Positions 6,223 through 48,954 of a stretch of DNA of 48,954 nt are shown here, one piece after another; within the stretch, counting starts at the first letter, position 1, and every line of letters begins with the position of its first letter. The translations under genes and the position numbers were made by a program. The notes below the pieces were generated by a model. It worked only from the letters and a program-made list of their open reading frames with translations. It was not told the origin of the DNA and did no database searches. The DNA comes from Octopus bimaculoides (Eukaryota). The stretch lies in contig NC_068984.1 of assembly GCF_001194135.2 (NCBI RefSeq), positions 144,144,556 through 144,193,509 of the forward strand, written 5' to 3'.

Positions 6223-6876
6223 CTACTCGTTTTTTTTACAAAGTCCACACATTTCCATGGAAACGTCCCACATTTTCTGGGCTAGTTGTTTGTCTTTCGC
6301 ATAAGGACTCAAATTTTGAGAAATTTTCATGTTTTCAAAATATTGACCAGACATGTCCTCCAAGTTGGGATCCATAGCCAAATAGGCAACAGTCAAAGCG
6401 GCATCTCTAGGTAACATGTTAAATTTTCTAGATATCAAATCGAAAAAACGGGAGACTATCTTCGCCAGCATCTTCTGATCTGTTGTTATCTTGGAACCAG
6501 ACCCAGTGTGAACACTGATTGTGCTCACTTGATAATCTTTCAGTTTTTCGCTTAAGATTTTAGCGTGCCAAATCTGAGCCAACTTGCTCATGTTATAACC
6601 AAACAGGTTTGGATATTTGATGTCTGATTCTTGTGTTAGTTGTCGTGAAAAATCTGGTTCTTCTTTGAGGAACGTGTCACCACACGGAATAACGTTGATA
6701 ACTCGGCTGGGAGAAGATTTCTTCAGTAGATCGATCAGTAAATAGGTTAACAGAAATGGTCCCACGTAATTAACGCCAAATACATAATCGTACCCTTGTT
6801 TCGTTAATTTAAAAGGACTTAGTCCTAATCCAGCGTTGTTGAACAATACATCAATTCGATCTTCCGATGCAGTGAT
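6223..6876 (-). CDS. SDR coding exon 2 (ITASEDRIDVLFNNAG...YNMSK...CKKNE*)
   Basis: Acceptor ttgttttgtttctgttttcAG (phase 0). NNAG, FGVNYVGPFLLT, YxxxK (YNMSK), SGQYF and A.KLW..S motifs. Spliced product is about 350 aa; intron is 2021 bp. Confidence 0.92.
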   Translation of the reverse strand: MTASEDRIDVLFNNAGLGLSPFKLTKQGYDYVFGVNYVGPFLLTYLLIDLLKKSSPSRVINVIPCGDTFLKEEPDFSRQLTQESDIKYPNLFGYNMSKLAQIWHAKILSEKLKDYQVSTISVHTGSGSKITTDQKMLAKIVSRFFDLISRKFNMLPRDAALTVAYLAMDPNLEDMSGQYFENMKISQNLSPYAKDKQLAQKMWDVSMEMCGLCKKNE

Positions 6877-6980
6877 CTGAAAACAGAAACAAAACAACAA
6901 AGCTAACAACAAATTCCGAATACAAATGACTAACTCTTTGAATTAACGTTTGATGGGGTTGTGTATACCGCAGTCATATG

Positions 6981-7127
6981 CACTAGCGTAGCCAGAGGGG
7001 GTGATAGGGTCGGTCCACCCCGGGCGGCACTTTTGGGTCAACTGTCAGCAATATGTTATTTCGGTTAATATCTAGATCCGCACCCGGATGGGGTCTGGGA
7101 GCGGCACACACTCTAGCTACGTTAGTG
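6981..7127. mobile_element. hAT-type MITE (147 bp) in the SDR intron
   Basis: TIRs CACTAGCGTAGCCAGAG / CTCTAGCTACGTTAGTG with an exact 8-bp TSD GTCATATG (6973-6980 and 7128-7135). Confidence 0.9.
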
Positions 7128-8897
7128 GTCATATGTACCCTTAATGTAATTCTCAAGGACCATCAGCCTAACACGTTATGTGAACATGGTAGATCTTTCA
7201 ATTGCAAGTGTAATCCACCCGACAGACTTCTAAACACTTTCTGCCCACCCAAATCCACCCAAAGTTTGTTGATACCTGGAGTTGTGATAAAATACCTAAG
7301 ATACTTAGCTGTATGATCGAACCCGGAACCTCGTGATTACCAAACGAACTTCTTAACTAGTCGATATGCTGCATTTGTCTTTAGCGCGATTACTTACAAT
7401 ATTTATATCGCCTCGCTATTTCCATCGGTTTGATCTCCGATTGTCCTCAGGCAACAATTAATCAGAGGACAAATATCCGTCGAATGTAAATAATCTAGAT
7501 AAAACGAGTCTGACAAAATGGTGGCGTTTTATTAAGATTATAAGCCAAGGAGACAACGTTCCTCACGGTCAATTAGCAGGGGTGGTGGTCAGAGCGTCTT
7601 TGCGATATTTGTTCTAGCTGTTATTTGAGAGAAGCTTATCAGCTATTTCTAGCGGTGCAGAGGTTGCCTCGACAGCCAGAACTTACAGTGTGTCAGGGAA
7701 TGGGTATCAATGAGATAGGCTTCTTTTGGATATTGCCCGTGGTGGATATGATGTCTCGCAAGAACGATATCGTAACAAATGTAAAATTAGTACCAGATTG
7801 TGACTTTTACTTAAAAATAAACGATCAGAAATTGTTCCAATCTTGATGTCCTGACGCTAAAGAAAGGGGCTCAGTTATGGGTCTTACATAAGTTTTGTGG
7901 AGGGGTCAGCAATTGATCAAAGCTGACATGTGATGCTACGTTGTCATCAACCAGCCCCATTAAGGGACATTTTCAAAATGCATTTCTATAGAAGTGACGC
8001 ACGTTTTAACATGAGGGTGTAAATTGCGTGTGGCTGACATCCGAATATAGAATATTAAGAAGTATTGAACAGTAATATGATCTATGAAGCAGCATGTTTG
8101 ATCGAAAGCGATAAGAAATAGATCATGAATGTACAAAGTGTGGCAGACACCAGTGAGCCTTGAAGCAAACACACTTCTGTCGTGATTATTCTATCCTAAT
8201 TTTCATACATAATGTATCAATGACTACATTATCCAATGTATTCTTCCTTGAGGAAGATTTGGTTGTTATTTCTAGCAAGCTGAGCGATCACATAGAGGCT
8301 TCCTTATAGGATTATCATTCAGGTGTCAATTTTCAACTGTTTAAAGGAAATATTAACCACATTGATCCCATTGTTTCTGAGGACATGTGAAGGCCATGGG
8401 CAGTTTCTCTGTAAGTCAAGGGAACAACTTTCCTCACTGGACAAGGGCACAGCTTTCCTCACTGGTCAAGAAGACAGCCTCTCGTTACAAGCCATGGAAT
8501 CGGCCATTCCTATGGGCCATGGATATAGCTCCTTCCTAAAGACCGACCCTTTTAAAAAATAACAAAATTATCATCTAAATAAGAGGTGAATGGGGTTCAT
8601 AGTTGCAGAACTTGAGGGACCCGTGCCAAACTAGGTTCAAAGCAATCTGAATTCACTTGATAACCTTTTATCTTTCAACAAGACATTTTATTTTTAAAGA
8701 AGAAATGAGATGTAGTGACATTCATGCCTTTCTCAGAAGTTCAGTGGTTCAGTAGCTTACTTGAAATGGATAAACATAATAAATCAGGAATGGAAACCAA
8801 TCGAACAGTTCGATTTACAATGAGTTTAGCTCCATCTCATGACAGTTTAACGTAAATGAATAAAACCGAATACACAAAGAATATTTTAAAAACTCAC

Positions 8898-9296
8898 TTT
8901 TTTAGCACATTCTCGGACGCTGTTGAGGTCTATAAAATCCAAATGGACAACGCTTAACATTTTAGGGTCTATACCGGTTGAATTTCGAATTTCATCGGCG
9001 ACTTCCTCCGCTTTAGATATATTCCTACAGGCCATGATTACTTTGGCACCCTGCGCAACAAGATACTCGGCAATGGATCTACCTGTACCCGAAGTAGCTT
9101 CAGTAATAAGTATCGTTTTCCCATCCATTCGGAAGTAGTTTTTATGGCACTTGAAATGATAATGATATCGGATTTTCATCGCAATTTTGGAGAGAATATA
9201 CAAGCAACACGTTGTGACTATACACAACAATATCGTGTAGAAAAGCATCGTAAAGATTTTTCCGTTTCTATCGAAATAATTCACTGCAAGTGACAT
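8898..9296 (-). CDS. Short-chain dehydrogenase/reductase (RDH11-14/WWOX-like classical SDR), coding exon 1
   Basis: N-terminal hydrophobic anchor (MLFYTILLCIVTTCCLYIL), KTILITEATSGTG, KVIMACRN, VHLD. Donor AAA|GTGAGT at 8897 (phase 0). The start could instead be the ATG at 9248. Confidence 0.9.
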
Positions 9297-9609
9297 TATT
9301 ACTTTTTAAAAAATGTTGCAAGCGCCGTATATTAATATATCGAACTAATAACTCTCTCCGTCTCTCCTTTAGCTAATTCGAACGTCTGCTTCAGACAATA
9401 TCAAAAACACAAATGTCTTAACGGATGAGGAAATGTTTTCTTTTTTTAAAAAATGGAAGAGAAAGTATTTAAATTCTGTTTCAGTTGTAGAGACGCAGCA
9501 GAGTGAAACATGTTTGGAACGTGACGATCTTCCACTCGGTATGCATCATCATCATCATTTACGTCCGTTTTTCTATGCTTTGTACGTATTTGTGTGTCAA
9601 CAACGAAAC

Positions 9610-10090: not shown

Positions 10091-12779
10091 GCTGGACTTA
10101 AATCTCTATACCAAAGCATTATATCGTGTATGTATGTATGTATGTATGTATGTACATCAGATTACTAGTGCTTCTGGTAACATGTAACGCAGTACAACCT
10201 GCCGCATGATCGAGCTGTCAGCGACTAAACCGGCAACCCTATCGAGCCTGCTTGGTAAGGTGGAGGATTTTCGTTGGACACCCAGCAGGACGAAAAGGAA
10301 AACTAAAAAAAAAACAAAAACGGATGAACTCAATAGAGTCAACGGCTAAACAACAGCTGGGGGTGAGAGACCCCTTAGTTTCTTCTTGGACAAGGAAAAC
10401 ACTGATACGACACCTGCAACTTTGTTTGTATCACTGTCCCCCGCTTCCGTTCGGGGACATAGAAATACCGGATGTAACGCCCAGGCGCGCGATAAACCGG
10501 GGGAAATGTCATTGCCTAAACATCCGTTGAAGCAAATATCAATAATGAAATTCCGAAATAACAGCCACCTCGTTGTAAAACCGGAGACGTTGGTCTTACT
10601 TGTTTCTGGACTCTCACCTGGCTTTGTAGGTGAGAGTCTTAGCGACGTTGTGCAAGCTGTTAGTGACTTAAAACTTCAGCACGGCCATTGCTAACCGCCA
10701 TTGTCTTAAACATCCAGGATAAATTGTCAGTGACGATCATGCTCGTCTAACGAGTTGACAGCCACTATGTATGTATGTATGTATGTATGTGTGTGTGTGT
10801 GTGTGTGTCCACTCGTGTGTGTGAGAATATATTCGCCTGTCTATATCGATACTTCAGTTTACAGCATCGCTTTCACATTGATTGAAGCCAAGCAATATCA
10901 CCGTAATAAACCTTCAATCAGAGCCATGATGTTTATTGTTTTAATTTTTTTTTTTTTGCCTTTCCTCTTATCTTTAATGCTTTCAATTAAGAAGCTTGTT
11001 GTTATTGTCGTTGTCCTAATGATCTTAAAATACGTGATTCGATTTTTTTTGTAAAGGACTCACAACAGAGACACTAGCAAGTATGACACAAAGTTCGCTC
11101 GTCACACTTTAAAAGCGAAAACAAAAAGATAAATAATTCTAATAAATTTGGAATAATTACGAAGATATATATATATACACACACATAGATAGATAGATAG
11201 ATAGATAGATAGACAGGTAAAACTTACTTGGAAATGGATGCGTGGCGTTCGATCATATATAAATAATATATATGCATATATACATACATATATGTACATA
11301 CCTACATAAGTATATATACATGCATATATAGGTACAGGACGTCAAAAAAACGTGAACAAAATGAGAAACGAGAACATAAAAAACAAAAACATGGAAAACG
11401 AACAACGAAAGAAACGAGACAGACAACATAAAGAACAATCCCTTCATCACATATGTGTGTGTGAGAGAGAGAGAGAGAGAGNNNNNNNNNNNNNNNNNNN
11501 NNNNNNNNNNNNNNNNNNNNNNNNNNNNNNNNNNNNNNNNNNNNNNNNNNNNNNNNNNNNNNNNNNNNNNNNNNNNNNNNNNNNNNNNNNNAAAATGATT
11601 TTTTTATAATTATTATATTTAAAGATTTAACCGGTTTCACAGTTTACGCTGATTTTCAAAAAGTTGAAATAGAAAGACGTGGCTTCTGTCGTAGCTGTCC
11701 GGTTTCTGGGTAGTGCTTGAAGCTTGCCCCTTTTTTATAGGGAGTTCATGACTCAAATCGATACGTTTTGAATAGGACCTGATTGGTAGAGGATAGTTGC
11801 ATGACTGGTCTTAGAAATTTTTATAGGTTCCCCGCTACGTCCGTGTGTTAGTATCAAGTGACAATGTTTGGCGTCGTAAGTTAAGGCTGACACGGTTGAC
11901 TGAACATGTTTGTAGAGGGACTGAACCCAGGACCATGTGGTTGGGAAAGATGCCTCCTACCACACACCCACGCCAGGAACATTAATCATAACTACCAAAC
12001 GAAAAATTGGATAAAGTTATATTTTTGACGAATTAGCAAGCGTTACTGAAATTTTCCCCAGTAAGTTCTGGGGATAGGGTTAAGTCGATTACATCAATCC
12101 CTCTGTTCAAATGGTACTTATTTTTATTGACCCCGAAAGCATGAAAGGCGAAGTCGACCTCGGAGGAGTTCGAACTTAGAACGTAAAGACGGACGATATA
12201 TTGCAAACGATTTTACCCAGCGATCTAACGAGTCTCTGCCAGTTCGCTGCCTTTGTCACAATTATAACATTGGTGAACTTATATCATCTCAGCTCAAACA
12301 TTTCGACAGATGAGTTTACTGAAAGATTGCTCGTTTTTTTGGGGTTTTTTTTTGTTTTTTGTTATCATATTTATCTCAGCTGAGTAGGAACGAATGAGTT
12401 ATTTTACGATGTTATAAAACTACAGCTGTGTGTTGACTATGTGTTGGGGGTGTTTGAAAATGAAGTCTTTTCTTATGTAGTGACAGGAACTATGTGAGTT
12501 GTAGCTTAAAATGTATCCGTTGCATGTCCAAGTGGTCTTTTATTTGTTTGCATTTTGGTTTCGTTGTGTAACTAGTCAGTATATCCAGTGGTCAGTGTAT
12601 GCAGTGGTCAGTGTATCGGGTCTGTGCATGTGGTCTCTTATATTCAACATGTTACGATGTTTAGTGCACCGGTTTGTATTCGTCGTTGTTTATTTCTGTT
12701 GGCTGAATGTTGGTCTTGTGGTCGTTCTCAGTATATCTCTGTACCGTTTATTAAATGTGATGTTTTGTAGTATTTGATG

Positions 12780-14030: not shown

Positions 14031-15720
14031 AAGCTTATCCCACGGCCATCACCATGGAAAGGCGTCTCCATAGTTTCAGCTGATTTGGGGCAACATCGAG
14101 GCCCACATTCTGGAAGCTGCATCTTAATATGTATCTTATAATATATCAAGATGTGTTGATGAGAGAGAGAGGGGGGAGAGAAAGAGCGGGAGGGAAGGGG
14201 AGGAGGGGTAGGGAGAGACAGAGGGAGGTGAGAGGAAAGTAAGAGGAGGATATGAGAAAGAGAGAGTAAGAAAGTGGTAATCGACAAGGAGCGTCGATAT
14301 TCGATATTCGTTATCGATTCTCTCTCTCTCTCTCTTTCTCTCTTTCAACACTGAACTATAGATTGTAGATTGGACAGCAAGGAGGGAGGTAAGAAGTGGA
14401 GGATGAGGGGGAAGTTAGAGAGAAATGATTGATTTTTATCTTTTACTTGTTTCGATTAACCCCATGGCAACGGGGTTTTTTTTTTATCAGGTAACTAAGT
14501 TGCACTGACGGTAATCATCTCGGCTGAGATCAGCAATTAGTGCACGGCATTGCTTCGGTGTATATTTACGTTAACCCCTTTAAACTATGCACTGTTTAAG
14601 TAAATTGTCATCACTGAGAAGACCGTAAATTCAACGAACCTGGCGTAGCAGGATGCGATTGTTAATTCCGTGAAGGAGAAGAAGAATTTGCTGAACCTGT
14701 ACGAATTTGATAGGAAGTCGTAGTGGAAATGGTGGTTGAACCACCTAAACTGCTGCTGCTTTAAAAAAACAGGAAATTTGGTACAGTTTATTAACCCATT
14801 ACCTCCCATAATTCTATTAACTGGAATTTTTTTTATGAAACTTTGATTTCTAGCATAAAACAGCCTTAGAAACACACTGGAATGATCACAATAACATTTC
14901 AAAATAACATTTTAAATAGAAATAAGCAAGATATTGGGTGAAAAATTAGCAAACCTCATTTGAATATCAGAGAAATATACCTAGTAGATATAGCAAAAAG
15001 GTTACAAAGCGAACTCCTTCACCACACACCCATACNNNNNNNNNNNNNNNNNNNNNNNNNNNNNNNNNNNNNNNNNNNNNNNNNNNNNNNNNNNNNNNNN
15101 NNNNNNNNNNNNNNNNNNNNNNNNNNNNNNNNNNNNNNNNNNNNNNNGACTTGTCTGTCGGAAGGAACATTCCTCATCGCCTCACCGATCCTCTCAGACC
15201 TGCCAGATGACTGCAGGAATTGTAGAGAATCAAACATTCTGGTGAGGAAAAAAGGAAAAAAAAAACTGGGTGAATTGATTAGGGAGAGGAGGGATATGGG
15301 GGGAGGTGAGCAGAATATGATGACGGGAAGAGAGACCGATAATTACGAAATTTGTAATTTTTAAGTGATCTCATATGAGATCACTGGTAGGTAACGGGTT
15401 ATATTGTTGGAAACAAAAAACAGATGTTAAAAGAAACAGTTGTTAAAACAGAACAAAAACATGAATGTTAGATGTTGTGCTCAAACTGCTTTCCGTGGGC
15501 AGCTACACAACGACGTAGATTGTCAAGCTAAGCTGACCTCCAGTTGCCCTTTGGATGACTGCAAGCGGGATATTGTTCTGAGTTTCCACCAACACAGTTT
15601 TTAACGATCGTATGTCTATGACTTTTCCCCTCTGTAATTGAAGCTGATGTAACAGTAAAGCCCACATGGTAAAATCCATTACGTTATGGTAGTCAATTTT
15701 TTTAGTTAATTGATAAAGTA

Positions 15721-18764: not shown

Positions 18765-19421
18765 NNNNNNNNNNNNNNNNNNNNNNNNNNNNNNNNNNNN
18801 NNNNNNNNNNNNNNNNNNNNNNNNNNNNNNNNNNNNNNNNNNNNNNNNNNNNNNNNNNNNNNNNNNNNNNNNNNNNNNNNNNNNNNNNNNNNNNNNNNNN
18901 NNNNNNNNNNNNNNNNNNNNNNNNNNNNNNNNNNNNNNNNNNNNNNNNNNNNNNNNNNNNNNNNNNNNNNNNNNNNNNNNNNNNNNNNNNNNNNNNNNNN
19001 NNNNNNNNNNNNNNNNNNNNNNNNNNNNNNNNNNNNNNNNNNNNNNNNNNNNNNNNNNNNNNNNNNNNNNNNNNNNNNNNNNNNNNNNNNNNNNNNNNNN
19101 NNNNNNNNNNNNNNNNNNNNNNNNNNNNNNNNNNNNNNNNNNNNNNNNNNNNNNNNNNNNNNNNNNNNNNNNNNNNNNNNNNNNNNNNNNNNNNNNNNNN
19201 NNNNNNNNNNNNNNNNNNNNNNNNNNNNNNNNNNNNNNNNNNNNNNNNNNNNNNNNNNNNNNNNNNNNNNNNNNNNNNNNNNNNNNNNNNNNNNNNNNNN
19301 NNNNNNNNNNNNNNNNNNNNNNNNNNNNNNNNNNNNNNNNNNNNNNNNNNNNNNNNNNNNNNNNNNNNNNNNNNNNNNNNNNNNNNNNNNNNNNNNNNNN
19401 NNNNNNNNNNNNNNNNNNNNN
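18765..19421. other. Assembly gap (N run). Other gaps: 11482-11591, 15036-15147, 31598-31607, 34256-34684, 39294-39303, 41708-41717
   Basis: Runs of n in the sequence. Confidence 1.
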
Positions 19422-31492: not shown

Positions 31493-32349
31493 TGTTTGTT
31501 AGAGCTGAGAGATGTCTTGCCATTGAAGCAGTCCTAGTCGTAGTAGCACAGAAGGAATGCGCACGCACACAAGCTACAGTCAGTGTCTGAGTTCACCNNN
31601 NNNNNNNACAATAATAATTAAAATAATAATAATAATGGTTAATTTTCGTCACAAAGCCAGCATTTTTGAAGGGAGCGGGAGGTCATTTCATACCATCGAC
31701 CCCCCCCCACCACCACCACCACTGGTTCCTTATTTCATCAATCCCAGAAGGGATGACCAGGCAAAGTTGACCATGACAGGATTTGAGCTCAGAATGTAAT
31801 AAACCTTAATAATAATAATAATAATAATAATATTGCTGATGACTATGATGATGATGATGAAAGTGTTTAGGGGTGGGGGGCAGTAGAGGAGTCAGTCCAC
31901 AGATAGAAGTCTGTGGTATTGTTAAGGGATTGGTAAACTCAAGATGAAGACCCATTAAAAACTAAATTTATTATTATTTTTATTATTAAGCACACAGCAA
32001 CAATAGTCACTGCTGCTGCTGCTGTTGTTACTGTTTTAAATTAAAACGTAAAAATGTACAAAAGAATGGAGCACCCAGTCTATTGGGCTTCATTACTGAA
32101 ATAGTTTCCATTTCAATTATTAATATTATTATTATTGTAATTATTAACAAAGTGCTCCCAAGGAATGATGGCGTAAGACAGCATATCAAGAAAGCTACAC
32201 ATGAAAATTTTGCAGATTTAAAAAGAAAAAACATCTCAACATGCTACAGTAGCAGGTTCAAATAACAGTGGAAGTGGCAAATGAGATGATTTACCCTTTT
32301 TTTTTTTTTAAATAAATATGGAAGGCTATGGCAGAATCTTTTAAAAAAA

Positions 32350-34111: not shown

Positions 34112-34982
34112 AAGTTACCTTCCTTGGGAGGCAAGGTGAAGAAAGGAACTAAGAAAATTAGTTGTATTACTGTTGTTGTTGCTATTGTTGTTGTTTTTAA
34201 AATATTAAAATAATCGACAATATCAAGGAAGAAGAAAGAGTCAACAGCCCCTCCCNNNNNNNNNNNNNNNNNNNNNNNNNNNNNNNNNNNNNNNNNNNNN
34301 NNNNNNNNNNNNNNNNNNNNNNNNNNNNNNNNNNNNNNNNNNNNNNNNNNNNNNNNNNNNNNNNNNNNNNNNNNNNNNNNNNNNNNNNNNNNNNNNNNNN
34401 NNNNNNNNNNNNNNNNNNNNNNNNNNNNNNNNNNNNNNNNNNNNNNNNNNNNNNNNNNNNNNNNNNNNNNNNNNNNNNNNNNNNNNNNNNNNNNNNNNNN
34501 NNNNNNNNNNNNNNNNNNNNNNNNNNNNNNNNNNNNNNNNNNNNNNNNNNNNNNNNNNNNNNNNNNNNNNNNNNNNNNNNNNNNNNNNNNNNNNNNNNNN
34601 NNNNNNNNNNNNNNNNNNNNNNNNNNNNNNNNNNNNNNNNNNNNNNNNNNNNNNNNNNNNNNNNNNNNNNNNNNNNNNNNNNNNTATGTGAAAGGGGAGG
34701 GGCGACATTTGTTAACGAGCCGATTTAGCTCAGTGGTAAATGTCGACAGTGTGTGGCAGCTAAATTTAATAGCCTTCAGATCCCCCCCCCCCTCCTCCTC
34801 CTCCCTCAGAGACAACCTCCACCAAAAGCCGACAGCACAGCTGACCATTCTCAGATGCTCACGTATTAGTCCCAAGTCCCTAATACTTCAGCACTTGCCG
34901 TTATAAATACAAAGAGGTTGGTTATAGAGAGAGGGAGAGAGATAGGTCAGCACTGAGAAAGGCTCCCCTCTGCTTGGTATCA

Positions 34983-35109
34983 TTATCGTCGGCCCGTAGG
35001 CGTCCGGGAACTTTTCCACAAACTGCCATTGATAACGATAGCATCAATAGACACAGATAAATGCTTCGTAGATGTCACTTCAGCAAAACTTTTACCACCA
35101 GAGTTGTAC
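34983..35109 (-). CDS. CAMSAP: CAMSAP/Patronin last coding exon: YNSGGKSFAEVTSTKHLSVSIDAIVINGSLWKSSRTPTGRR*
   Basis: Acceptor gttccAG, phase 2 (AA+G = Lys). KYNS..K.F...K.LS.S.DAI.I...LW ends the CKK domain; TAA at 34985-34983. Absent from the ORF track. The 5' part of the gene lies beyond the window. Confidence 0.93.
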
Positions 35110-36064: not shown

Positions 36065-36228
36065 TTGTAATATTTTTCAATATTTTTGCTAGTCACCAAT
36101 TTTGGTCCAATTCCATGAATTTTAACAGCCTCTTCATGCTCTGGGTAATAGGCATATAGTGACCGAAATGCACAACCTGTGTCCCGGAATAATATCACAA
36201 AATGCTTTGCATCGGATTTCGCAATTTC
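36065..36228 (-). CDS. CAMSAP: CAMSAP/Patronin CKK exon 2: EIAKSDAKHFVILFRDTGCAFRSLYAYYPEHEEAVKIHGIGPKLVTSKNIEKYY(K)
   Basis: Acceptor tttgtattgcAG (phase 0), donor AA|GTAAGT (phase 2). CKK motifs ILFRD.GC.FR.LY and GIGPK. Confidence 0.95.
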
Positions 36229-37214: not shown

Positions 37215-37725
37215 ATGCAGGGTTTTGTGGCTGAGAAGACCCGGCAAATAAAGTGAGATCACAGCTGTCACCTACACCAATGTTGTATAACCAGCCCACT
37301 CAAAAAGTACCCTTGGGTCGTAGGGTGACATGCTGTGCTTGAGGAGACCTATTGAGTCAAGTACATCAAAATAAAAATCAAATCAAATGGAAATTGTAGT
37401 TGTGGTCCCCGTGTAGGTGGCACGTAAAAAGCACCATCCAAACGTGGTCAATGCCAGCTCCCTCTCCCCGACTGGCTTCCGTGTTGGTGGCACATAAAAA
37501 GCACCGTCCAATTGTGGTTGATGCCAGCAACCTTCAGGCCCATGCCGGTTGCATGTAAAAATCACCCACTGCACTCTCAGAGTGGTTGGCGTTAGGAAGG
37601 GCATCCAGCTGCAGAAACTCTGCCAAATCAGATTGGTGTCTGGTGTAGCCTTCTGCCTTGCCAGTCCTCAGTCAAATCGTCCAACCCATGCTAGCATGGA
37701 AGGCAGACGTTAAACGATGATGACA
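37215..37725 (+). mobile_element. SINE-like repeat (family D here) with a (GAT)n tail
   Basis: GGTGGCACGTAAAAAGCACC repeats, GTTGGCGTTAGGAAGGGCATCCAGCTG, CCAACCCATGCTAGCATGGAA.GC.GACGTTAAACGATGATGA. Related copies at about 18210-18425(+), 35710-35990(+) and 43485-43680(-). Confidence 0.8.
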
Positions 37726-37902: not shown

Positions 37903-38021
37903 CTCTAAGACTTTATTTTTCAGATCTAAGTTCACACATCCTGCTAAACAACAATGACTAATGGCATTAATTATAATGTGACGGTTTGACTTGGAGCTTG
38001 GTTTCACAAAGAGTTTGGGAC
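37903..38021 (-). CDS. CAMSAP: CAMSAP/Patronin CKK exon 1: GPKLFVKPSSKSNRHIIINAISHCCLAGCVNLDLKNKVLE
   Basis: Acceptor cttttccAG (phase 1), donor GAG|GTTAGT (phase 0). Motif GPKL..PS.KSN..II.NA..HCCLAG.VN is characteristic of the CKK domain. Confidence 0.95.
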
Positions 38022-38739: not shown

Positions 38740-38823
38740 CTGTATAGTCCGAACCAGCAGTTGAACCTGCATCACTGCTACTCTCAGTACTCTTACCACT
38801 CTTCCTACCAAATCGGTACAAGT
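38740..38823 (-). CDS. CAMSAP: CAMSAP/Patronin exon (84 nt, phase 1-1): DLYRFGRKSGKSTESSSDAGSTAGSDYT, Ser-rich linker before CKK
   Basis: Acceptor ttttccAG, donor G|GTATTG. Ends in DYT-G, matching the EYTGPKL context at the start of CAMSAP CKK domains. Confidence 0.85.
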
Positions 38824-39293: not shown

Positions 39294-40722
39294 NNNNNNN
39301 NNNTATATATATATACTGCCAGCGTCTATACTTACCAAATAAACGCTGCCAGTTCTTGCATTCACTCCAAAAACACTTCCAATCTGTACTCATCATATAA
39401 ACATTGTGAACCAAGAACTCTTAGGTAAGATTTCTTAATTTAGTTTCAAGACATTATAGCAATGTGCCTTGAGTCAAATAAAGAACAGAATAAAAGACAT
39501 CTTGAAGGAAGAAAAACATCTAATTTTTTCTGCAATTGAGTGGGGAGGGGGTCAGAGAGAGAGAGAGAGAGTATAAAAGCATGTTTGATAATGATAATTA
39601 TAATAATATCAAAATTAAAAGAAGAAGGGTGCCATTGTCGTCTAGTGAATGCTATTTCGACATTCCATGTGTCTTCAACAGGTTCAAAAAATAATTTTGT
39701 CAATCTACTTCATTTTGGTTAATATATAAAGGATTGAGGTAACCCCTCCAGTTGACAATGGCATGCTTCTTCTAATTTTGACTCTATATCTTCTGGAGGA
39801 ATTACCTCAATCCTTTATATATCAATAATAAAAATAATAATAATAATACTGAAATACAAAAAGGATAGTTCCTCACAAAACTTTCAAAGGTAATTCTTAT
39901 AAGAAGCAGTAAAAAAACTCTCAGTTCTGAGGGTTAACTGAAATTATTGAAGTTTCTTGTGGTTCCATGCTGCTGGCTGCCAAAATGACAACTAAATAGC
40001 AGGATTTTTATTTGGGAAGTTCTTAGAGACTACTGGGCATATCCTAGAGATTTGTCTCTCATCACCTCTTAATTACAAAAACTAAACCACATCTAATATC
40101 ACTGGGTATGAGCAAATGTGGGAGGCCCTAAATTGTCAGTGAACCTGCTAGAAATAACAGCTACATCTCCTGCAAATCATACTCGTTTAATGTAGTTCTA
40201 AATACACAATGTCTGAATTATCTTTGAAATAACTCGGCCAGATCAGTGCCGATTTACAGGCTACAACAACAACAACAGGAATCCTGGAGGTACAGGAGTT
40301 TATAAACTTCCAGACAAGATTCAGTGCTACAAGACATGTTAGCAGTCACAGAAGATAGAGATTCCGGTAAAAGGAACCATGGGCTACAAAGATGCAAGAG
40401 ATCGCTTCATTAGAACACTACAGCCAGAGGTTAGCCTGGCTGCTATGAACTGAGGCGGCACAGTTTACGGTGACTGGTAAGGATATTAGGGTTCAATTGC
40501 AGAGGGAAGACATGAATGATAGAGGAGGAGATGGTTCAACGAATGATACAAGAAGATGTGGTTGTTGGATTTTAGGTTGAGGGCAGAAGATGCAAAAGTC
40601 ATAAGAAGAAATGATGTTATTCTATTATGATCGATTACAATGAGAGATGAACTTAAAGAGCATGAGGTTGGCCTCAGGTCAGCTCTGATGAACAAAAACA
40701 TTCCAGGCATGACCATCTGGCC

Positions 40723-40934: not shown

Positions 40935-41163
40935 AGACAGGGTTGGCCAAAAGTCACCCGACAGTAAATCAAAAATCCCATAAATACTTAATATTCAATT
41001 TTATTTATTCATTCCAATTATGAATCTTTAATAATTGAATGCTGCAAGTTAAAATCACCATTTTATTTTCTTCAACATTTTGTCTATAAAATATTTTTTT
41101 GTTTTAATCTAGGAATTAAATGGTTTTGATTTACTGTCAGGTGACTTTTGGCCAACCCTGTCT
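40935..41163. mobile_element. MITE with about 40-bp TIRs (Tc1/mariner-like CAGGG termini)
   Basis: AGACAGGGTTGGCCAAAAGTCACCCGACAGTAAATCAAAA is almost perfectly inverted at 41124-41163. No TA TSD is visible. Confidence 0.8.
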
Positions 41164-41707: not shown

Positions 41708-41852
41708 NNNNNNNNNNCCATTCGTTGAGGTAACAACTTATGGAAAATTTGGGGTCACATTTTATAGCAGGAGTATCAGACAGCAGCCTGTTTTGCTGAA
41801 AGAGGTTATTTGCTTTGCCTGAAGGTTAAAAGGTCTTCTTATATGCCAGCAT

Positions 41853-41892
<40 letters not shown>

Positions 41893-44366
41893 TGTGTGTG
41901 TGTTTGTGTGTGTGTGTGGAGAGAGCAGGGGGAGGGGCAGCACCGATGTCTATAAATGTGTAGTCAGAGAGACAATCACAATGAAATTTTGGAACCCTTA
42001 ACAACCAAATTCATTGCATCCCTAACATTTGTAACCTGGACAAGAGAGCATTTTAAGGAGAGACACAGTAATAATTTTCATTTGAATGTACAAGAGACAA
42101 ACAGACAGACGAAAACAGAGAACCATACTCTAAAAAGGTGTTTAGATTTCAATTTCCTCTTCACCAATATTCAATACCCAGCTACAGTCTATGAGTCTCT
42201 GTCATCCCAGAGCTGTTTTCTAAATACTAAGTATTCCAAGGAATCCAGGGAGTTATTTTGGTAAAACTTTACAAAAATACAATAAAATTCGTAATGAGAA
42301 AACAAAAACACAAAAAAAAGAATTCTTTTAATCTTCTTCCTTTTTCTTAAATTTCAAATTCAAACTTGTATCCCTGCCAAGATTTATCTAGAAATGATTA
42401 TCTCCCTTACAACAACGGCTTACCAAAGCGGATCAGTGTTTGTGGCGAATTTTTAAAAGCTTTTATTTGTCTACTAAATTCTATGAATGTTCGAGACTAG
42501 GTTTGCATCTGCTCATCAAAATTTGTGAAATAACTAAGTTTGAGGGATTTTCTTAGCAAAAAAAACTTAAGTATCTTGCAAGGCTTCCTAAAACCTTATC
42601 AATTAGTTTGGACTCTTTGAAGATCATTAACTGTTAGAAACTCATAAAATCTTCAAAATATGAAAAAAAAATATTTGAAGACCAAATGGGTTTCAAAAAT
42701 TGTTGTTTAGCATCAGAGTGGCAGGTATATGAACAAAGCTAGTCCAGCCATGACCATCCTGTTGTCTTCGTACATAAAACTAACCTAAGACAGAAATTAT
42801 CTTTATATGAAAGGTGGAGAAGACACCAACAGGCCAAGCTAATTACTCATTAGCAATACTACAACAACTTGGTCAATTATCAGCTCTAGTTCTGAAAGAA
42901 AGTATCACTAAACTAGCAGAACAGCATTTCAGATAAAGCTTTAATTAATTTGTGATTTAATTAAAAACTTGTCCCGAAAATTCCATACTTATATTCAGAT
43001 AAAAAGGTGCATCATTAATTAGTAGTAATGAGGAAAAGATAATTTTTTTTTTTAAGACTGTTGCTTATGAGAAGTGTCTATATTTTAAGGGTTGTAGAAA
43101 CATGCCCCAGGCCCTACGGTAAACATGTGCAGAGTTATGGTGAAACTTGAGGAGAGGGACCCTTAACTAGAAACATGCACAGATGTAACATGCAATCCAA
43201 TAACATTTTAGTGGTTGATGTAGTGTTGTCAATGATATCTGCAGAGGACTACTGTTGAACACACACTCAACACCCACCACCCTTGCCATCCCCACGTTTG
43301 GGGTCTCATTTTTCTTGGGTTCAATGGACTCATAAAACCGGTCACACAGTTTCTATGACACGTGAGTGATCAAGATCACAACAATCTCCCCTCAAGTCAG
43401 CATTTCAGAGGGAAGAGAGGAGCGGGGGACAAGTTGACTGCATGACCCCCTGCACCTGACTGGCATTTTCACCATCATCATCATCATCATCGTTTAACGT
43501 CCGCTTTCCATGCTAGCATGGGTTGGACAATTTGACTGAGGACTGGTGAGCCAGATGGCTACACCAGGCTCCAATCTGATTTGGCAGAGTTTCTACAGTT
43601 GGATGCCCTTCCTAACACCAACCACTCCAAGAATATAGTGGGTGCTTTTACGTGCCACCGGCACAAGGGCCAGTCAGGCAATGCTGAAATACATTTTTTC
43701 CAACATGTTAACGATTCTGCCAGTGTACCAACTTCTTCCCTAAATGGAACTGTGATTATTTCTCAACGACTCCATTGTCGGCGTAAACATGGCATTTGTA
43801 ATATATCCTCAATTCTGATTTTTACTGAAGGTTTTACAGTAAAAATATTCTTCTTAAATCTGAAATAATTTCAACGTCAACCATAAGTCAAACGTCTTGA
43901 CTGGGTGAAATGAGTTGTAGAACAAGACTTGTACAGACAGACACTGCCGTGAATAAATACTAGAGATATCAGCAGTTAATGTTGTCAAACTGCAATATCA
44001 AATTTCAAGACAATTCATAGAACTACAGAACCATATATAGAATGGAAGAAGGGATTCCTGATAAATGGTCAACTCTGATCAATTACAGAATCACACTGAC
44101 ACAAACATTCAGAGCTCCCAATCAACCAATTCTTTCAAAGTAAAGACTAAAAATATGGTGAAAAGTGTGTAAAAAGAATACTACAGAACTAAAAGTGATG
44201 TAAAGTTGCTAGCTCCCATCAGCACCACCACCATCTACAGCAACACTAGCTTTGTCACTACACCCACCACCACCACCACCACAACCACCATTTCTATCAT
44301 GCCAAGAGTCAGTCACCAACTAGAATCTACAGAGATGTTTATATGTTGGAAGCAGTAAAACTGCAA

Positions 44367-44397: not shown

Positions 44398-44469
44398 CTG
44401 GGGATGGTGGCCGTCTGCCAGTTCCGTAACGACCAGAGTGATTTTGTTGTGTGAATAGGCTCATCATCA
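44398..44469 (-). CDS. CAMSAP: CAMSAP/Patronin internal exon B (72 nt, phase 1-1): xMMSLFTQQNHSGRYGTGRRPPSP
   Basis: Acceptor ttcttcctcttcctctAG, donor G|GTAAAT. In frame with the downstream exons (G+AC = Asp). 13 of 23 full codons encode the same residue as exon A. Confidence 0.75.
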
Positions 44470-45064
44470 CTAGAGGAAGAGGAAGAACAATCAAAACAGC
44501 CCCTCCTAGAACTCCATCTTCAGGCTCGGTCACTTTACCGACAGCCTGTGTCAGGGAGTTGTCGCAAGACTTACAATGATATTTGGAAGGTTTACTTCAT
44601 GCAAATAATTATTGTTTCACGGGAAGAGGGAGAAAAATTATGATTTTTATTTAATATTATCCAGGAACAAGGAGGTGACAGAATGGACAATTTTTGAATT
44701 TATACAAAAATTTATTCTATCTGCAACTCACTAAAGTTTAAAATATAAACTTAAAACTTAAAGTTCTTAAATTTATCGGATAAGATGAGTGAGGTTTAAT
44801 TTCTTTGCTTACACATTATATATAATTAACAAATGTTTAATTAATATCTGTAATTTATTTTTATATACTTCATAACAATATATAACCCCTACTCTCCCTG
44901 CTGTCAAGGTTGATTCTAACATCCAAGCGTTTGTTAATTTACCATTTCAATGTTGGTGCAATTAATCTGTAAGACCAAATCCCCATTCTTCAATCCAAAT
45001 TAATTTCAAAAATTAAAAAAAAATTACGATTACAGACCATTTGGTAATTTACAGTCAATACCCA

Positions 45065-45200
45065 TGACTTTCAGAAACATTTTTTCAAGCTCAGAATTGC
45101 TGAAGCATGGAATAAACCACCCACCTCAGTTGTTAGCGGTTGGGATGCTATGTCCTTCAAAACTTCCTGAAATTCACCAACAACAGTACCCCTGATGTCC
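45065..45200 (+). mobile_element. CR1-type LINE 3' end remnant inside the intron between CAMSAP exons A and B
   Basis: FQKHFFKLRIAEAWNKPPTSVVSGWDAMSFK matches the CR1 ORF2 tail R.HFF..RV...WN.LP..VV......FK. Confidence 0.7.
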
Positions 45201-45657
45201 CCCAACCTTTACTTTTTTTTTTTTTGTTTTAACGATTCATTTACTGTCCATGCACTTTTGGTTACTTTGTTGTGATGGGTTGTAGTGCACCTGAGCACTG
45301 TAAACAATAAGTTCATTGTTATTATTATTATTATTATTACTACTACATAAAGTTGTAGAAGGAGGACAAAACTAGAGAAACCTTGTTTATAACAAAAGAA
45401 TTTAATGACTCGTCCAGTATTATTTCAGCACAATTTTACTAATCAAATTCAGCTCTGAACTGAGCGGAACTGGACTGGACTGGTTTCAACTGGTCTGGAC
45501 TAAATGCTAATTCCATTCAAGTAAAGAATTTCAAATTTAAAAAAGAAAAAGAAAAAAAAAACAGTTCAGATGAATTATTAAGATAAAATTTTTATCCAAC
45601 GCGAGAAGCAGGTGAGAAATGATAGGAGTTAATTAGATTAATTCTAAAGTAGTTTAC

Positions 45658-45729
45658 CTGGAGATGGAGGTCTTCTGCCAAAGTTAGTGCGCCCCGAGTT
45701 GCCTTGATTTGCCAGTAAGTTCATTGACA
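45658..45729 (-). CDS. CAMSAP: CAMSAP/Patronin internal exon A (72 nt, phase 1-1): xSMNLLANQGNSGRTNFGRRPPSP
   Basis: Minus strand: pyrimidine tract ttttcttttctttgtAG, open 72-nt exon, donor G|GTAAAC. Splices in frame to exon B or to the 38823 exon. Paralogous to exon B. Confidence 0.75.
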
Positions 45730-47119
45730 CTACAAAGAAAAGAAAAATTATATCAAACATTAGTTTCAAAAGTAACAGTTTTATTGGAAATTAAATATAT
45801 ACATTTATGCTAATTAATTTATTTAATTAGAATCAGTGTCATTTTAAATATTGCACTAATTTCCTAAGTACACTAAGAAGAGTAAAATTAAACATTTCAA
45901 ATAACGACAACTGGCTACAAAAATATAAAGTCACAGGGTTTATAAAATAGTTTTAATGTTTAATTAAGGTTTACAGAGAATTTATAAAACAATTAAGATA
46001 TAAATAACAGCAAGAAAAAGACACCTTTTGCATTCATAGGCTTCAAGTGGTGACAGTAAAATTCAATATTCTTAGAAATATACAAAACCCCACATCAAAT
46101 ATAAAAGCAAGACCAATGGTTTGGCAATTAGGCATGCAGATGTAATTAAATCTTAATTAATCTTTTAAAATTATCCAGAGAAACTTTAAGACATGACTAC
46201 TTTAACACATTAACCACATGTCTCCAATGGTGCTTCATTGCAAACTTCACACAACCATCATATGCACCACCAGTGGTACAATTTTCAGAATTTGATAAAC
46301 TATTTTCATTCTGTATCTTTGACATGCATTCCAGGCTATTTAAACTAACATGAATGCTAAATATTGAAGTTTAATTATGAAATATCGTAAAAATGCAAAA
46401 AAAAAAAAAAAAAAAAAAAATCACATTTCCTTGTAATTAAACTAATCAGTTTGATTGGAAATATGTGGTGTCACCAGTAAGGTCCAGTAACAGGCTGCAG
46501 TGATTAATGTGTTAATGTATATAAACCGTCTACATTATTGTGTTGAGTCCGAAGACTCATAGCATTGGTCAGCTAGTATCCAGAGTTATAAATAACCAAA
46601 ACCACAACGTTGACCCTCAACGCAACACCAGACCATTACAGTTGAGTGGACTGAAGTAACGTTAAATAAAGTGTCTTGCTCAAATAAACCTTGACCGTAC
46701 AATCATGAGGGGCAACACCCTGACCAAAAGGCCTTAAATACATATTTTTGCTTATACTTATACAAACAGAATAAAACAATTAACAATTCATAACGAAGGG
46801 ATTGTTAAAACAAAGCTATACAGTTTATATCTATTCTATTTTTATAAAAAAAAAAAAAGAAAGGCTGTTAGACTAAAAATTAGTAAATTCCAGTTTAATT
46901 ATTTTACTGATACCAGTCATTAAGTTGGAGTATCACCCTCTATGAAATGATGAATACATCTTTGGGAAAACTTAAATCAATTATAATCACAAAGCTCTCT
47001 ATATTCAACTGGTTCCACAAACTGCCAGTTTCGTAGTGAATTACATCTACAGTCAGTGTTGGTGGCGCCACTGTTGTCCATCCATCTGTATTAGCCTCAC
47101 AACTGGCAGAGATAAGAAA

Positions 47120-47560
47120 CCTTTCTACAAGGCCTGGAGTTTCGGTGGGAGGTGGGACACTCAATTACACCAATTTTATCAACCCAAAGAGGATGAAAGG
47201 TAAAGTCCATCTTGGCCGAATTTGAACTTAGAACGTAAAGCCAGAAGACATGCAGCTGAGCATCTTGTCCAACATGCTTATGATTCTGTTGTGCTCACTG
47301 CCTTAACTGGACAACACAATAATAATTATAATTATAATATTAATCCTTTCTACTGGAAGTACAAGGCCTGAAATTTGGGAGAGGGGCTAGTCGATTAGAT
47401 TCCCCCACCCCCGTATGCAACTGGTACTTAATTTATTGACTCTGCAAAGATGAAAGGCAAAGTCGACCTCGGCGGAATTTGAACTCAGAACGTAGTGACA
47501 AGTGAAATACTGCTAAGCATTTCATCAAGCATGCTAACGATTCTGCCAGCTCACCGCCTT
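47120..47560 (-). mobile_element. Two tandem family C SINEs separated by an (AAT)n tract
   Basis: Both copies contain GATGAAAGG.AAAGTC.A.CT.GGC.GAATTTGAACT.AGAACGTA. Confidence 0.8.
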
Positions 47561-47569
47561 TGGCATAAT

Positions 47570-47608
<39 letters not shown>

Positions 47609-48504
47609 CTGTTGTTGTTGATCAATGGAAGTTCACTGAGGATTCAGTTGTTTAATCAAATTAATTGTTCATCCAATTAGCACGTAAGTGGCTGAGTATT
47701 CCATAGTCATGTGTACTCTTAACTTAATTCCCAATCAGAATCAGTACGACAGAGTGTACAACAAGGTTGTACCTTTGAATTACAGGTACAATCGATTACA
47801 GGTAAGAGGATCTCCACCAAATGTTATTTCAAATAATATTTAGAAGAGAGAAAACAGACAGAAAGATGTAACCCATGGTTGTCATAAGAAACCTGTGCAG
47901 TGGTGTGTGTGGGGTCTGAAGGGTCAAGTGAAAGAGTCAAGGATACAGAGCTGAAACCTGAAGTGCTGGGTTTATAGCAACAACAGAGAACGAAACACCA
48001 CAGACAATTGCCAAGTTGATAGTGAGAGGAACACTAAGAAACTATCAGACCAGTTATAAAATTACAGTCTGCAAATGGAAACTTTGGTATATTAAAGAAC
48101 TGTGCCAAGAGGAAGGTAGGAGGAAGGATAGGTTAGTATACCTACAGTGGAAATGCCTGAGATTTGACGCAGACTCTTCTACTGTTACTAGAAAAGCAAC
48201 TAAGGTGCTATATTAAGCCTAGCACAGACAAGGATTAAAGGGTTTTTCTAGATTGTATATATTACATCATAAGAATTCAGTAACTTCCAAAGATGTAAAA
48301 TAATTTATTTTTAATAATGTAAAGCTTTCCGGTAGCCTTCATGATCCAAAGGGGTTTTTAGCACAACATTTACTTGCTATTACTAACTGAAGCTATGTGA
48401 AATGAAGTACCTTGCTCAAGAACCCAATAACCTGGCCCAGGAATTGAACCCACAGCCTTACAATTGCAAGTCCAACAACCTAACCACTAGGTCACACAAG
48501 TTCA

Positions 48505-48650
48505 CATTATGTACATTATTTACATTTGGCGGATATTTGTCCTCATCTTGTTTGTTGTTAACATGTTTCGGCTGATATACCCTCCAACCTTCATCAGTTG
48601 TCTTGGGGAAACTTCAAACCTGGGTTCTCATTCCTAAGGTATTTTTCAAT
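48505..48650 (-). repeat. Interspersed repeat carrying a minimal hammerhead-ribozyme-like core
   Basis: Minus strand CTGATGA-a-GGTTG-gagggtatat-CAGCC-GAAAC. The same repeat tail (gaggacaaatatccg..aatgtaaataat) recurs at about 7465-7494. Confidence 0.6.
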
Positions 48651-48652
48651 GC

Positions 48653-48683
<31 letters not shown>

Positions 48684-48954
48684 GTTCAGTTGTTTTATTT
48701 TTATAACGTGCTTTCACTTCACTACCGAGCGCAGCTCTGTGCGCCTTGGGTATGTGCTGTGGTGCTCTTATGTTTACTGTATTGAAAGTGTTTTGCGTAG
48801 AATGTGTGCAGTACCCAGTAGTGCAATTTTCTGTATGTTATATATATTTGTAAGTCCTGGTGTTTTTGTTATGTATTTGTCTGAATATTTTTTTTATTAT
48901 ACCTAAGGCACCTACTATGATAGGAATTGTTTCTGTTTTTAGATTCCACATTCG
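48653..48954 (-). mobile_element. 3' end of an RLE-type (R4/Dong-like) non-LTR retrotransposon with 3' UTR and (TAA)n tail
   Basis: RMWNLKTETIPIIVGALGII-(+1 frameshift in an A8 run)-KKYSDKYITKTPGLTNIYNIQKIALLGTAHILRKTLSIQ*, stop at 48776-48774. IP...GALG and QK..LLGTA.ILR are R4/Dong C-terminal motifs. (TAA)n at 48653-48683. Confidence 0.85.

Follow-up and report, generated by a model that had tools for sequence, protein, structure and literature searches.

The 3′ end of a CAMSAP/Patronin gene

The window analysed here, a stretch of 48,954 nucleotides, contains the 3′ end of the Octopus bimaculoides CAMSAP/Patronin gene. Two observations lead to this assignment, which an earlier note on the same DNA had already proposed: the Pfam family CAMSAP_CKK (PF08683) matches residues 77-196 of the spliced product with an E-value of 3.2e-52, and the translation is 100% identical to the O. 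bimaculoides entry A0A0L8HL32 in UniProt. The solved CKK structures of CAMSAP1 and CAMSAP3 match the spliced product as well (E 5e-46 for the CAMSAP1 CKK chain 6qus_I in the PDB), and the orthologues carry CH, CC1 and CKK domains. The part of the gene for the N-terminal CH domain and the CC1 region is outside the window; in the full-length orthologues P0044, P0193 and P0194, PF11971, PF17095 and PF25532 are present. The features that matter for what follows are given below in window coordinates and in the order of transcription.

Exon A, 45658..45729, minus strand: 72 nt, phase 1-1, encoding xSMNLLANQGNSGRTNFGRRPPSP; read here as the constitutive copy of the motif exon, from its sequence, its splice sites and 25 of 25 orthologous proteins and transcripts
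A-B intron, 44470..45657, minus strand: 1188 nt, GT..AG, with a run of (AAU)n, as read in the RNA, at 45310-45352
Exon B, 44398..44469, minus strand: 72 nt, phase 1-1, encoding V-MMSLFTQQNHSGRYGTGRRPPSP when joined to A; read here as a cassette exon, paralogue of A
Exon C, 38740..38823, minus strand: 84 nt, phase 1-1, encoding DLYRFGRKSGKSTESSSDAGSTAGSDYT (DLYRFGRK...SDYT); acceptor for both A and B
Exon D, 37903..38021, minus strand: start of the CKK domain (GPKLFVKPSSKSNRHII...)
Exon E, 36065..36228, minus strand: middle of the CKK domain
Exon F, 34983..35109, minus strand: end of the CKK domain, with the stop codon TAA at 34985..34983

The exon preceding A falls outside the window, as do the alternative exons of the orthologue P0192. 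A protein search with the read-through open reading frames around A and B returned P0001 as its sole match. Exon D is also carried by a separate 1.1-kb contig (P0013).

The assembly contains runs of N, 1338 in all, at 11482-11591, 15036-15147, 18765-19421, 31598-31607, 34256-34684, 39294-39303 and 41708-41717. With the gap at 34256-34684 located some 300 nt past the CAMSAP stop codon, the 3′ UTR is incomplete here. Further downstream, about 26 kb past this stop codon, a second gene lies on the minus strand at 6226-9305; two or more of its exons encode a short-chain dehydrogenase/reductase (Pfam adh_short, E 2.5e-9 and 6.8e-9).

Two related exons upstream of the CKK domain

Exons A and B are each built of two bases, 23 codons and one base, which gives phase 1-1. 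Their splice sites are alike, with a pyrimidine tract and AG acceptor on one side and a CCAG/GTAAA donor on the other (the slash marking the exon end), and both exons finish in GRRPPSP-G/GTAAA. Identity between them amounts to 13 of 23 residues and 43 of 72 nucleotides, and seven of the 13 common residues are written with different codons. The earlier note had described the pair as 72-nt exons of phase 1-1 lying 1188 nt apart, with 13 of 23 residues in common, and had placed the start of the next exon at 38823; all of this is confirmed, the next exon being C.

The likeness between the two peptides is far beyond chance. Aligned without gaps, they reach a BLOSUM62 score of 67, while the next best score is 22 among the 94,152 six-frame 23-mers of the window (mean -27, SD 10.5). 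GRRPPSP occurs at exons A and B only, and the window holds no third copy of either the exon or the motif. At the DNA level the similarity is confined to the 3′ end of the exon and five nucleotides of the donor, and the introns flanking A in the window do not align with those flanking B. So restricted a likeness, set between unrelated introns, fits an old duplication.

One exon always used, the other optional

How the two exons are used was assessed in a census of 25 sequences that cover the region, both annotated proteins and RNA contigs assembled de novo, the species being O. sinensis, O. vulgaris, O. bimaculoides and Argonauta hians, together with cuttlefish. With the full-length A. hians protein P0044 as query, two clusters were obtained, one of O. 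vulgaris and O. sinensis proteins and one of Sepia (Acanthosepion) pharaonis proteins together with de novo RNA contigs. The census was drawn from the matches listed, with eight further members of the Octopus cluster left out. Among the 25, many of which are pipeline gene models and able to combine exons that never occur together, 14 have A only, spliced to C, and 11 have A followed by B.

O. sinensis RefSeq: A only in X3, X6, X8, X9 and X10; A+B in X1, X2 and X4
O. vulgaris: A only in 3; A+B in 3
Sepia (Acanthosepion) pharaonis: A only in 1; A+B in 3
Argonauta hians: A only in 0; A+B in 1
O. bimaculoides: A only in 2; A+B in 0
Cuttlefish RNA contigs: A only in 3; A+B in 1

None of the 25 sequences has B only, and none lacks both exons. 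Exon C, like A, is found in all 25, so that the exons flanking B are constitutive. The A-C junction is present in P0001 and P0192, and the B-C junction in P0044 and the RNA contig L002. In Argonauta the full-length A. hians protein GAB1597927.1, obtained by exhaustive profile-free search, reads ...SMNLLANQGNSGRTNFGRRPPSP-V-MMNLFTQHNNSGRYGTGRRPPSP-DLYRF..., which is A and B in tandem. The gene extends over more than 100 kb at the Argonauta locus, and the A. hians gene models rest on combined ab initio, RNA-seq and homology evidence (vampire-squid paper). The two O. bimaculoides models, A0A0L8HL32 and RefSeq XP_014771440.1, were built by different pipelines and both join A straight to C.

The RNA contigs come from four separate cuttlefish RNA-seq runs (SRR25097173, SRR9970006, SRR8281691 and SRR8281664), measure 6-7.8 kb and contain single open reading frames of 1761-1862 aa, and they are therefore spliced mRNAs. 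L002 (SRR25097173, 7.5 kb, one ORF of 1785 aa) shows CCATCTCCAG joined to TGATGATGAAC, which is the A-B junction, and CCGTCACCAG joined to ATCTTTACCG, which is the B-C junction. L003 shows CCATCTCCAG joined directly to ATCTTTACCG at the DNA level, that is, A to C, and L004 and L005 encode A-only products (P0242 and P0243).

These transcripts bear directly on the proposal of the earlier note that A and B are a mutually exclusive pair, in which each mRNA would have A or B, never both and never neither. The anatomy invites such a reading, as the exons are adjacent and homologous and agree in length, phase and splice-site type. These are the criteria by which mutually exclusive exons have been predicted (PMC3228551), and the resemblance to known mutually exclusive pairs of tandem-duplicate exons extends to age and selection (PMC3228551, PMC5740500). 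What sets A and B apart from such pairs is that inclusion of exactly one exon is not what is found: forms with both are common, one of them a cuttlefish RNA contig assembled de novo, and B alone is absent. Nor does the exon and intron anatomy offer anything that would prevent double inclusion, be it a frame shift followed by decay, steric hindrance or incompatible U2/U12 sites; the exon length of 72 nt is a multiple of three, the intron between the copies has 1188 nt, and both introns are GT-AG. Since A-B junctions exist, the pair is not mutually exclusive, and we give this reading hardly any weight.

The earlier note had itself set constitutive A-B junctions, as the mark of an internal repeat, against mutual exclusion. 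The junctions do exist, which makes the pair an internal repeat and not an either/or choice, and the second unit of this repeat is optional and not constitutive. Were both exons always included, the A-only forms would have to be errors of annotation or assembly. A+B is indeed annotated in four genera, and COE transcription factor genes provide a precedent in which a duplicated exon, kept in frame beside its parent as here, has become mandatory (PMC2394523). Against a constitutive repeat stand the A-only products of three independent RNA contigs, each assembled de novo from a run of its own and one of them with its A-C junction seen in the DNA, as well as the A-only forms among five O. sinensis RefSeq isoforms, three O. 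vulgaris models and both models of O. bimaculoides. We therefore judge it extremely improbable that, as in the COE genes, the second copy is mandatory in CAMSAP.

The remaining reading is the one that we prefer. A is present in every form and B in some, whatever the upstream exons, as B is included alongside every combination of upstream alternative exons; this pattern is that of a constitutive exon followed by a cassette exon. Transcripts with and without B, both in frame, are found in O. sinensis, O. vulgaris and S. pharaonis, and also among the cuttlefish RNA contigs. It is very probable that A is constitutive and B a cassette exon, the two being paralogues that arose by tandem duplication before octopods and cuttlefish separated. 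The spliceosome joins A either directly to C or to B and then C, and both products stay in frame because each exon has 72 nt and is symmetric. The four in-frame combinations that the earlier note had listed are thus realised in part: 72 is divisible by three, as stated, and A-only and A+B are seen, and B-only and the skipping of both have a count of zero among the 25. A rare B-only form may occur in some other tissue, the census carrying no tissue information. In O. bimaculoides itself, inclusion of B would be expected, as its exon B is identical (23/23) to that of O. sinensis and O. vulgaris, two species with annotated A+B isoforms.

Age of the duplication and selection on the copies

Both copies can be followed in octopods and cuttlefish. 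Relative to octopus, exon A is identical at 23/23 positions in Argonauta and at 20/23 in cuttlefish; relative to O. bimaculoides, exon B is identical at 23/23 in O. sinensis and O. vulgaris, at 20/23 in Argonauta and at 16/23 in cuttlefish. Octopus A is nearer to cuttlefish A than to cuttlefish B (pN 0.12 versus 0.27), and octopus B is nearer to cuttlefish B than to cuttlefish A (pN 0.19 versus 0.28). Since A thus groups with A and B with B across the two animals, the duplication is older than the split between Octopodiformes and Decapodiformes, which dates back roughly 250 million years. For the split between Argonauta and Octopus, a fossil lower bound of about 29 Ma is available (vampire-squid paper); the argonaut genome paper gives no divergence date. 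The earlier note's suggestion of an old, selected exon duplication is thus upheld, with both copies present and orthologous in octopods and cuttlefish.

Comparison of octopus and cuttlefish gives pN 0.12 and pS 0.71 for exon A, pN 0.19 and pS 0.48 for exon B, and pN 0.055 and pS 0.64 for exons C-F, values that are rough because each of the two exons has 23 codons and synonymous sites are near saturation (pS 0.5-0.7). They indicate purifying selection on both copies, with B evolving faster than A.

The faster change of B could be taken as a sign that this exon is a tolerated, low-level by-product of splicing without a function of its own. B differs from its counterpart at 7 of 23 residues between octopus and cuttlefish and at 3 between octopus and Argonauta, against 3 and 0 for A, and it is skipped in both O. 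bimaculoides models. However, its length, phase, open frame and invariant GRRPPSP end have been kept in Octopus, Argonauta and cuttlefish, over a span in which synonymous sites have come near saturation; the introns beside the two copies in the window have diverged beyond alignment, and pN is below pS. A neutral pseudo-exon could not have lasted through this. Faster change combined with a preserved length, frame and GRRPPSP end is the usual picture of a functional alternative exon and argues against noise, and we consider it very improbable that B is such a by-product.

Haliotis, Patella, Aplysia and other molluscs outside the cephalopods have the motif exon as a single copy. Gastropods and bivalves read ...RKAV SCNTL...TYRRPPSP DLYR..., and arthropod Patronins have S(L)MNL...PPRRAPSP at the same place. 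The RR(P/A)PSP motif is absent from the vertebrate-CAMSAP-like sequences in the sample. The most probable course of events is the following: an ancestral molluscan exon of 72 nt and phase 1-1, encoding a conserved protostome linear motif that ends in RR(P/A)PSP, was duplicated in tandem before octopods and cuttlefish diverged, the upstream copy A keeping the constitutive role and the downstream copy B turning into a cassette exon.

Two further sequences in the sample touch on this region. The arthropod-like protein P0147 (1410 aa) has the homologous block GSGSDQEGMAFRHADTDSGLGRATPPRRAPSPGMGPHGRHLPSPS twice, as an exact tandem repeat; this could reflect an error of assembly or else a separate, recent duplication. 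In P0055 (Littorina saxatilis, 2146 aa), RRPPSPRGRPPSP directly precedes GPKLF.

Relation to known systems

The arrangement fits best among the cassette exons that have arisen by tandem exon duplication. With other such exons, which lead to variable repeat numbers, B has in common that it is symmetric, that it is included or skipped in frame, that its neighbouring copy is constitutive, and that it encodes a short motif in a region predicted to be disordered. The CAMSAP case differs in being conserved across octopods and cuttlefish and undescribed in the literature searched. Within the CAMSAP/Patronin family, the gene is typical in its C-terminal CKK, in the domains of its orthologues and in an RR(P/A)PSP upstream of CKK, which other molluscs and arthropods have as well; it departs from the other molluscs examined, which have one copy of the motif exon, and from the vertebrate-CAMSAP-like sequences of the sample, which have no such motif.

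The A-only and A+B isoforms are already known from RefSeq and GenBank annotation, and a constitutive A with an optional B is an ordinary kind of alternative splicing. The literature searched contained no paper on this duplication and nothing relevant on mutually exclusive exons in CAMSAP, on Patronin splicing, on CAMSAP in cephalopods, on phosphorylation of the Patronin linker or on the RRPPSP motif. What is gained is, in part, the correction of an attractive call: equal length, equal phase and homology are insufficient for mutual exclusivity when the length divides by three. The remaining yield is modest, namely an exon duplication in octopods and cuttlefish that varies the copy number of a conserved linear motif beside CKK. 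The RR[P/A]PSP motif, common to molluscs and arthropods, may merit attention from researchers working on Patronin regulation.

A variable linker and its possible function

The earlier note had assigned A and B to the linker next to CKK, on its upstream side, and this location is borne out: exon B ends about 29 residues before GPKLF, where CKK starts. AlphaFold2 predicts a confident CKK fold for residues ~80 to 204. Over most of the stretch from residue 1 to 74, which corresponds to exons A, B and C, it gives a pLDDT below 50 and no secondary structure; the solved CKK structures cover query residues 66-206 only. Each copy of the motif has three arginines and a single SP site and lacks acidic residues. 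When B is included, the linker gains 24 residues, three positive charges and a second RRPPSP motif. The gene thereby yields a protein with one or two basic Ser-Pro motifs in a predicted-disordered linker before the CKK domain, which binds microtubule minus ends.

Further variation lies close by. In the coleoid orthologues P0229, P0220, P0224 and P0192, three more in-frame cassette exons are found just upstream of A, encoding SKSGPLLSTSWPAGPSQLEVIKMGLQHGICCCK, (G/W)ISLSSPAPAR and SRIPHYSRSGLRKA. All three lie beyond the window end at 48954 and occur in many combinations; the last of them, SRIPHYSRSGLRKA, is conserved in gastropods and bivalves (...GK[LM]RKAV). With at least four cassette exons in the coleoid orthologues, the linker before CKK appears to be a hot spot of alternative splicing.

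Inclusion of B may alter the electrostatic contact with the microtubule, the length of the tether or proline-directed phosphoregulation. We infer that the copy number of the motif may tune binding of CKK to microtubules or the control of this binding by phosphorylation, and that inclusion of B may be regulated by tissue. A fuller version of this idea, which we regard as rather doubtful, is that inclusion of B is a regulated switch older than the octopod/cuttlefish split, which doubles RRPPSP in the CKK tether and could shift the binding strength of CAMSAP or its control by kinases at minus ends or along the lattice, with intronic (AAU)n/(AUU)n pairing as a possible influence on inclusion.

Intron repeats and possible RNA pairing

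Complementary AU trinucleotide repeats are present in three introns around A and B, at 48642-48686, 47565-47610, 45310-45352 and 39813-39862. In the pre-mRNA, the (AAU)n run of the A-B intron could pair with (AUU)n upstream of A at -33.8 kcal/mol, in which case A would be looped out, or with (AUU)n downstream of B at -28.3 kcal/mol, and B would then form the loop. The two runs upstream of A could also pair with each other (-30.0). These pairings are the best partners among the 860 intron windows tested, and the 49-kb window contains seven perfect runs of at least 15 nt. The arrangement may be due to chance, as A is never skipped. A search of the three introns for complementarity of the docking/selector type gave AU microsatellites and repeat elements only.

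The introns also harbour other repeats. In the B-C intron, arms of 40 nt at 40935-40974 and 41124-41163, 98% complementary and 149 nt apart, make up an inverted repeat that resembles a small foldback (MITE-like) element. Several copies of an interspersed repeat (families D3 and D11), which have translated fragments and DNA similarity in common, lie at 43562-43762, 37386-37667, 47100-47294 and 47436-47621; these positions are all within CAMSAP introns, before and after exon A as well as downstream of B.
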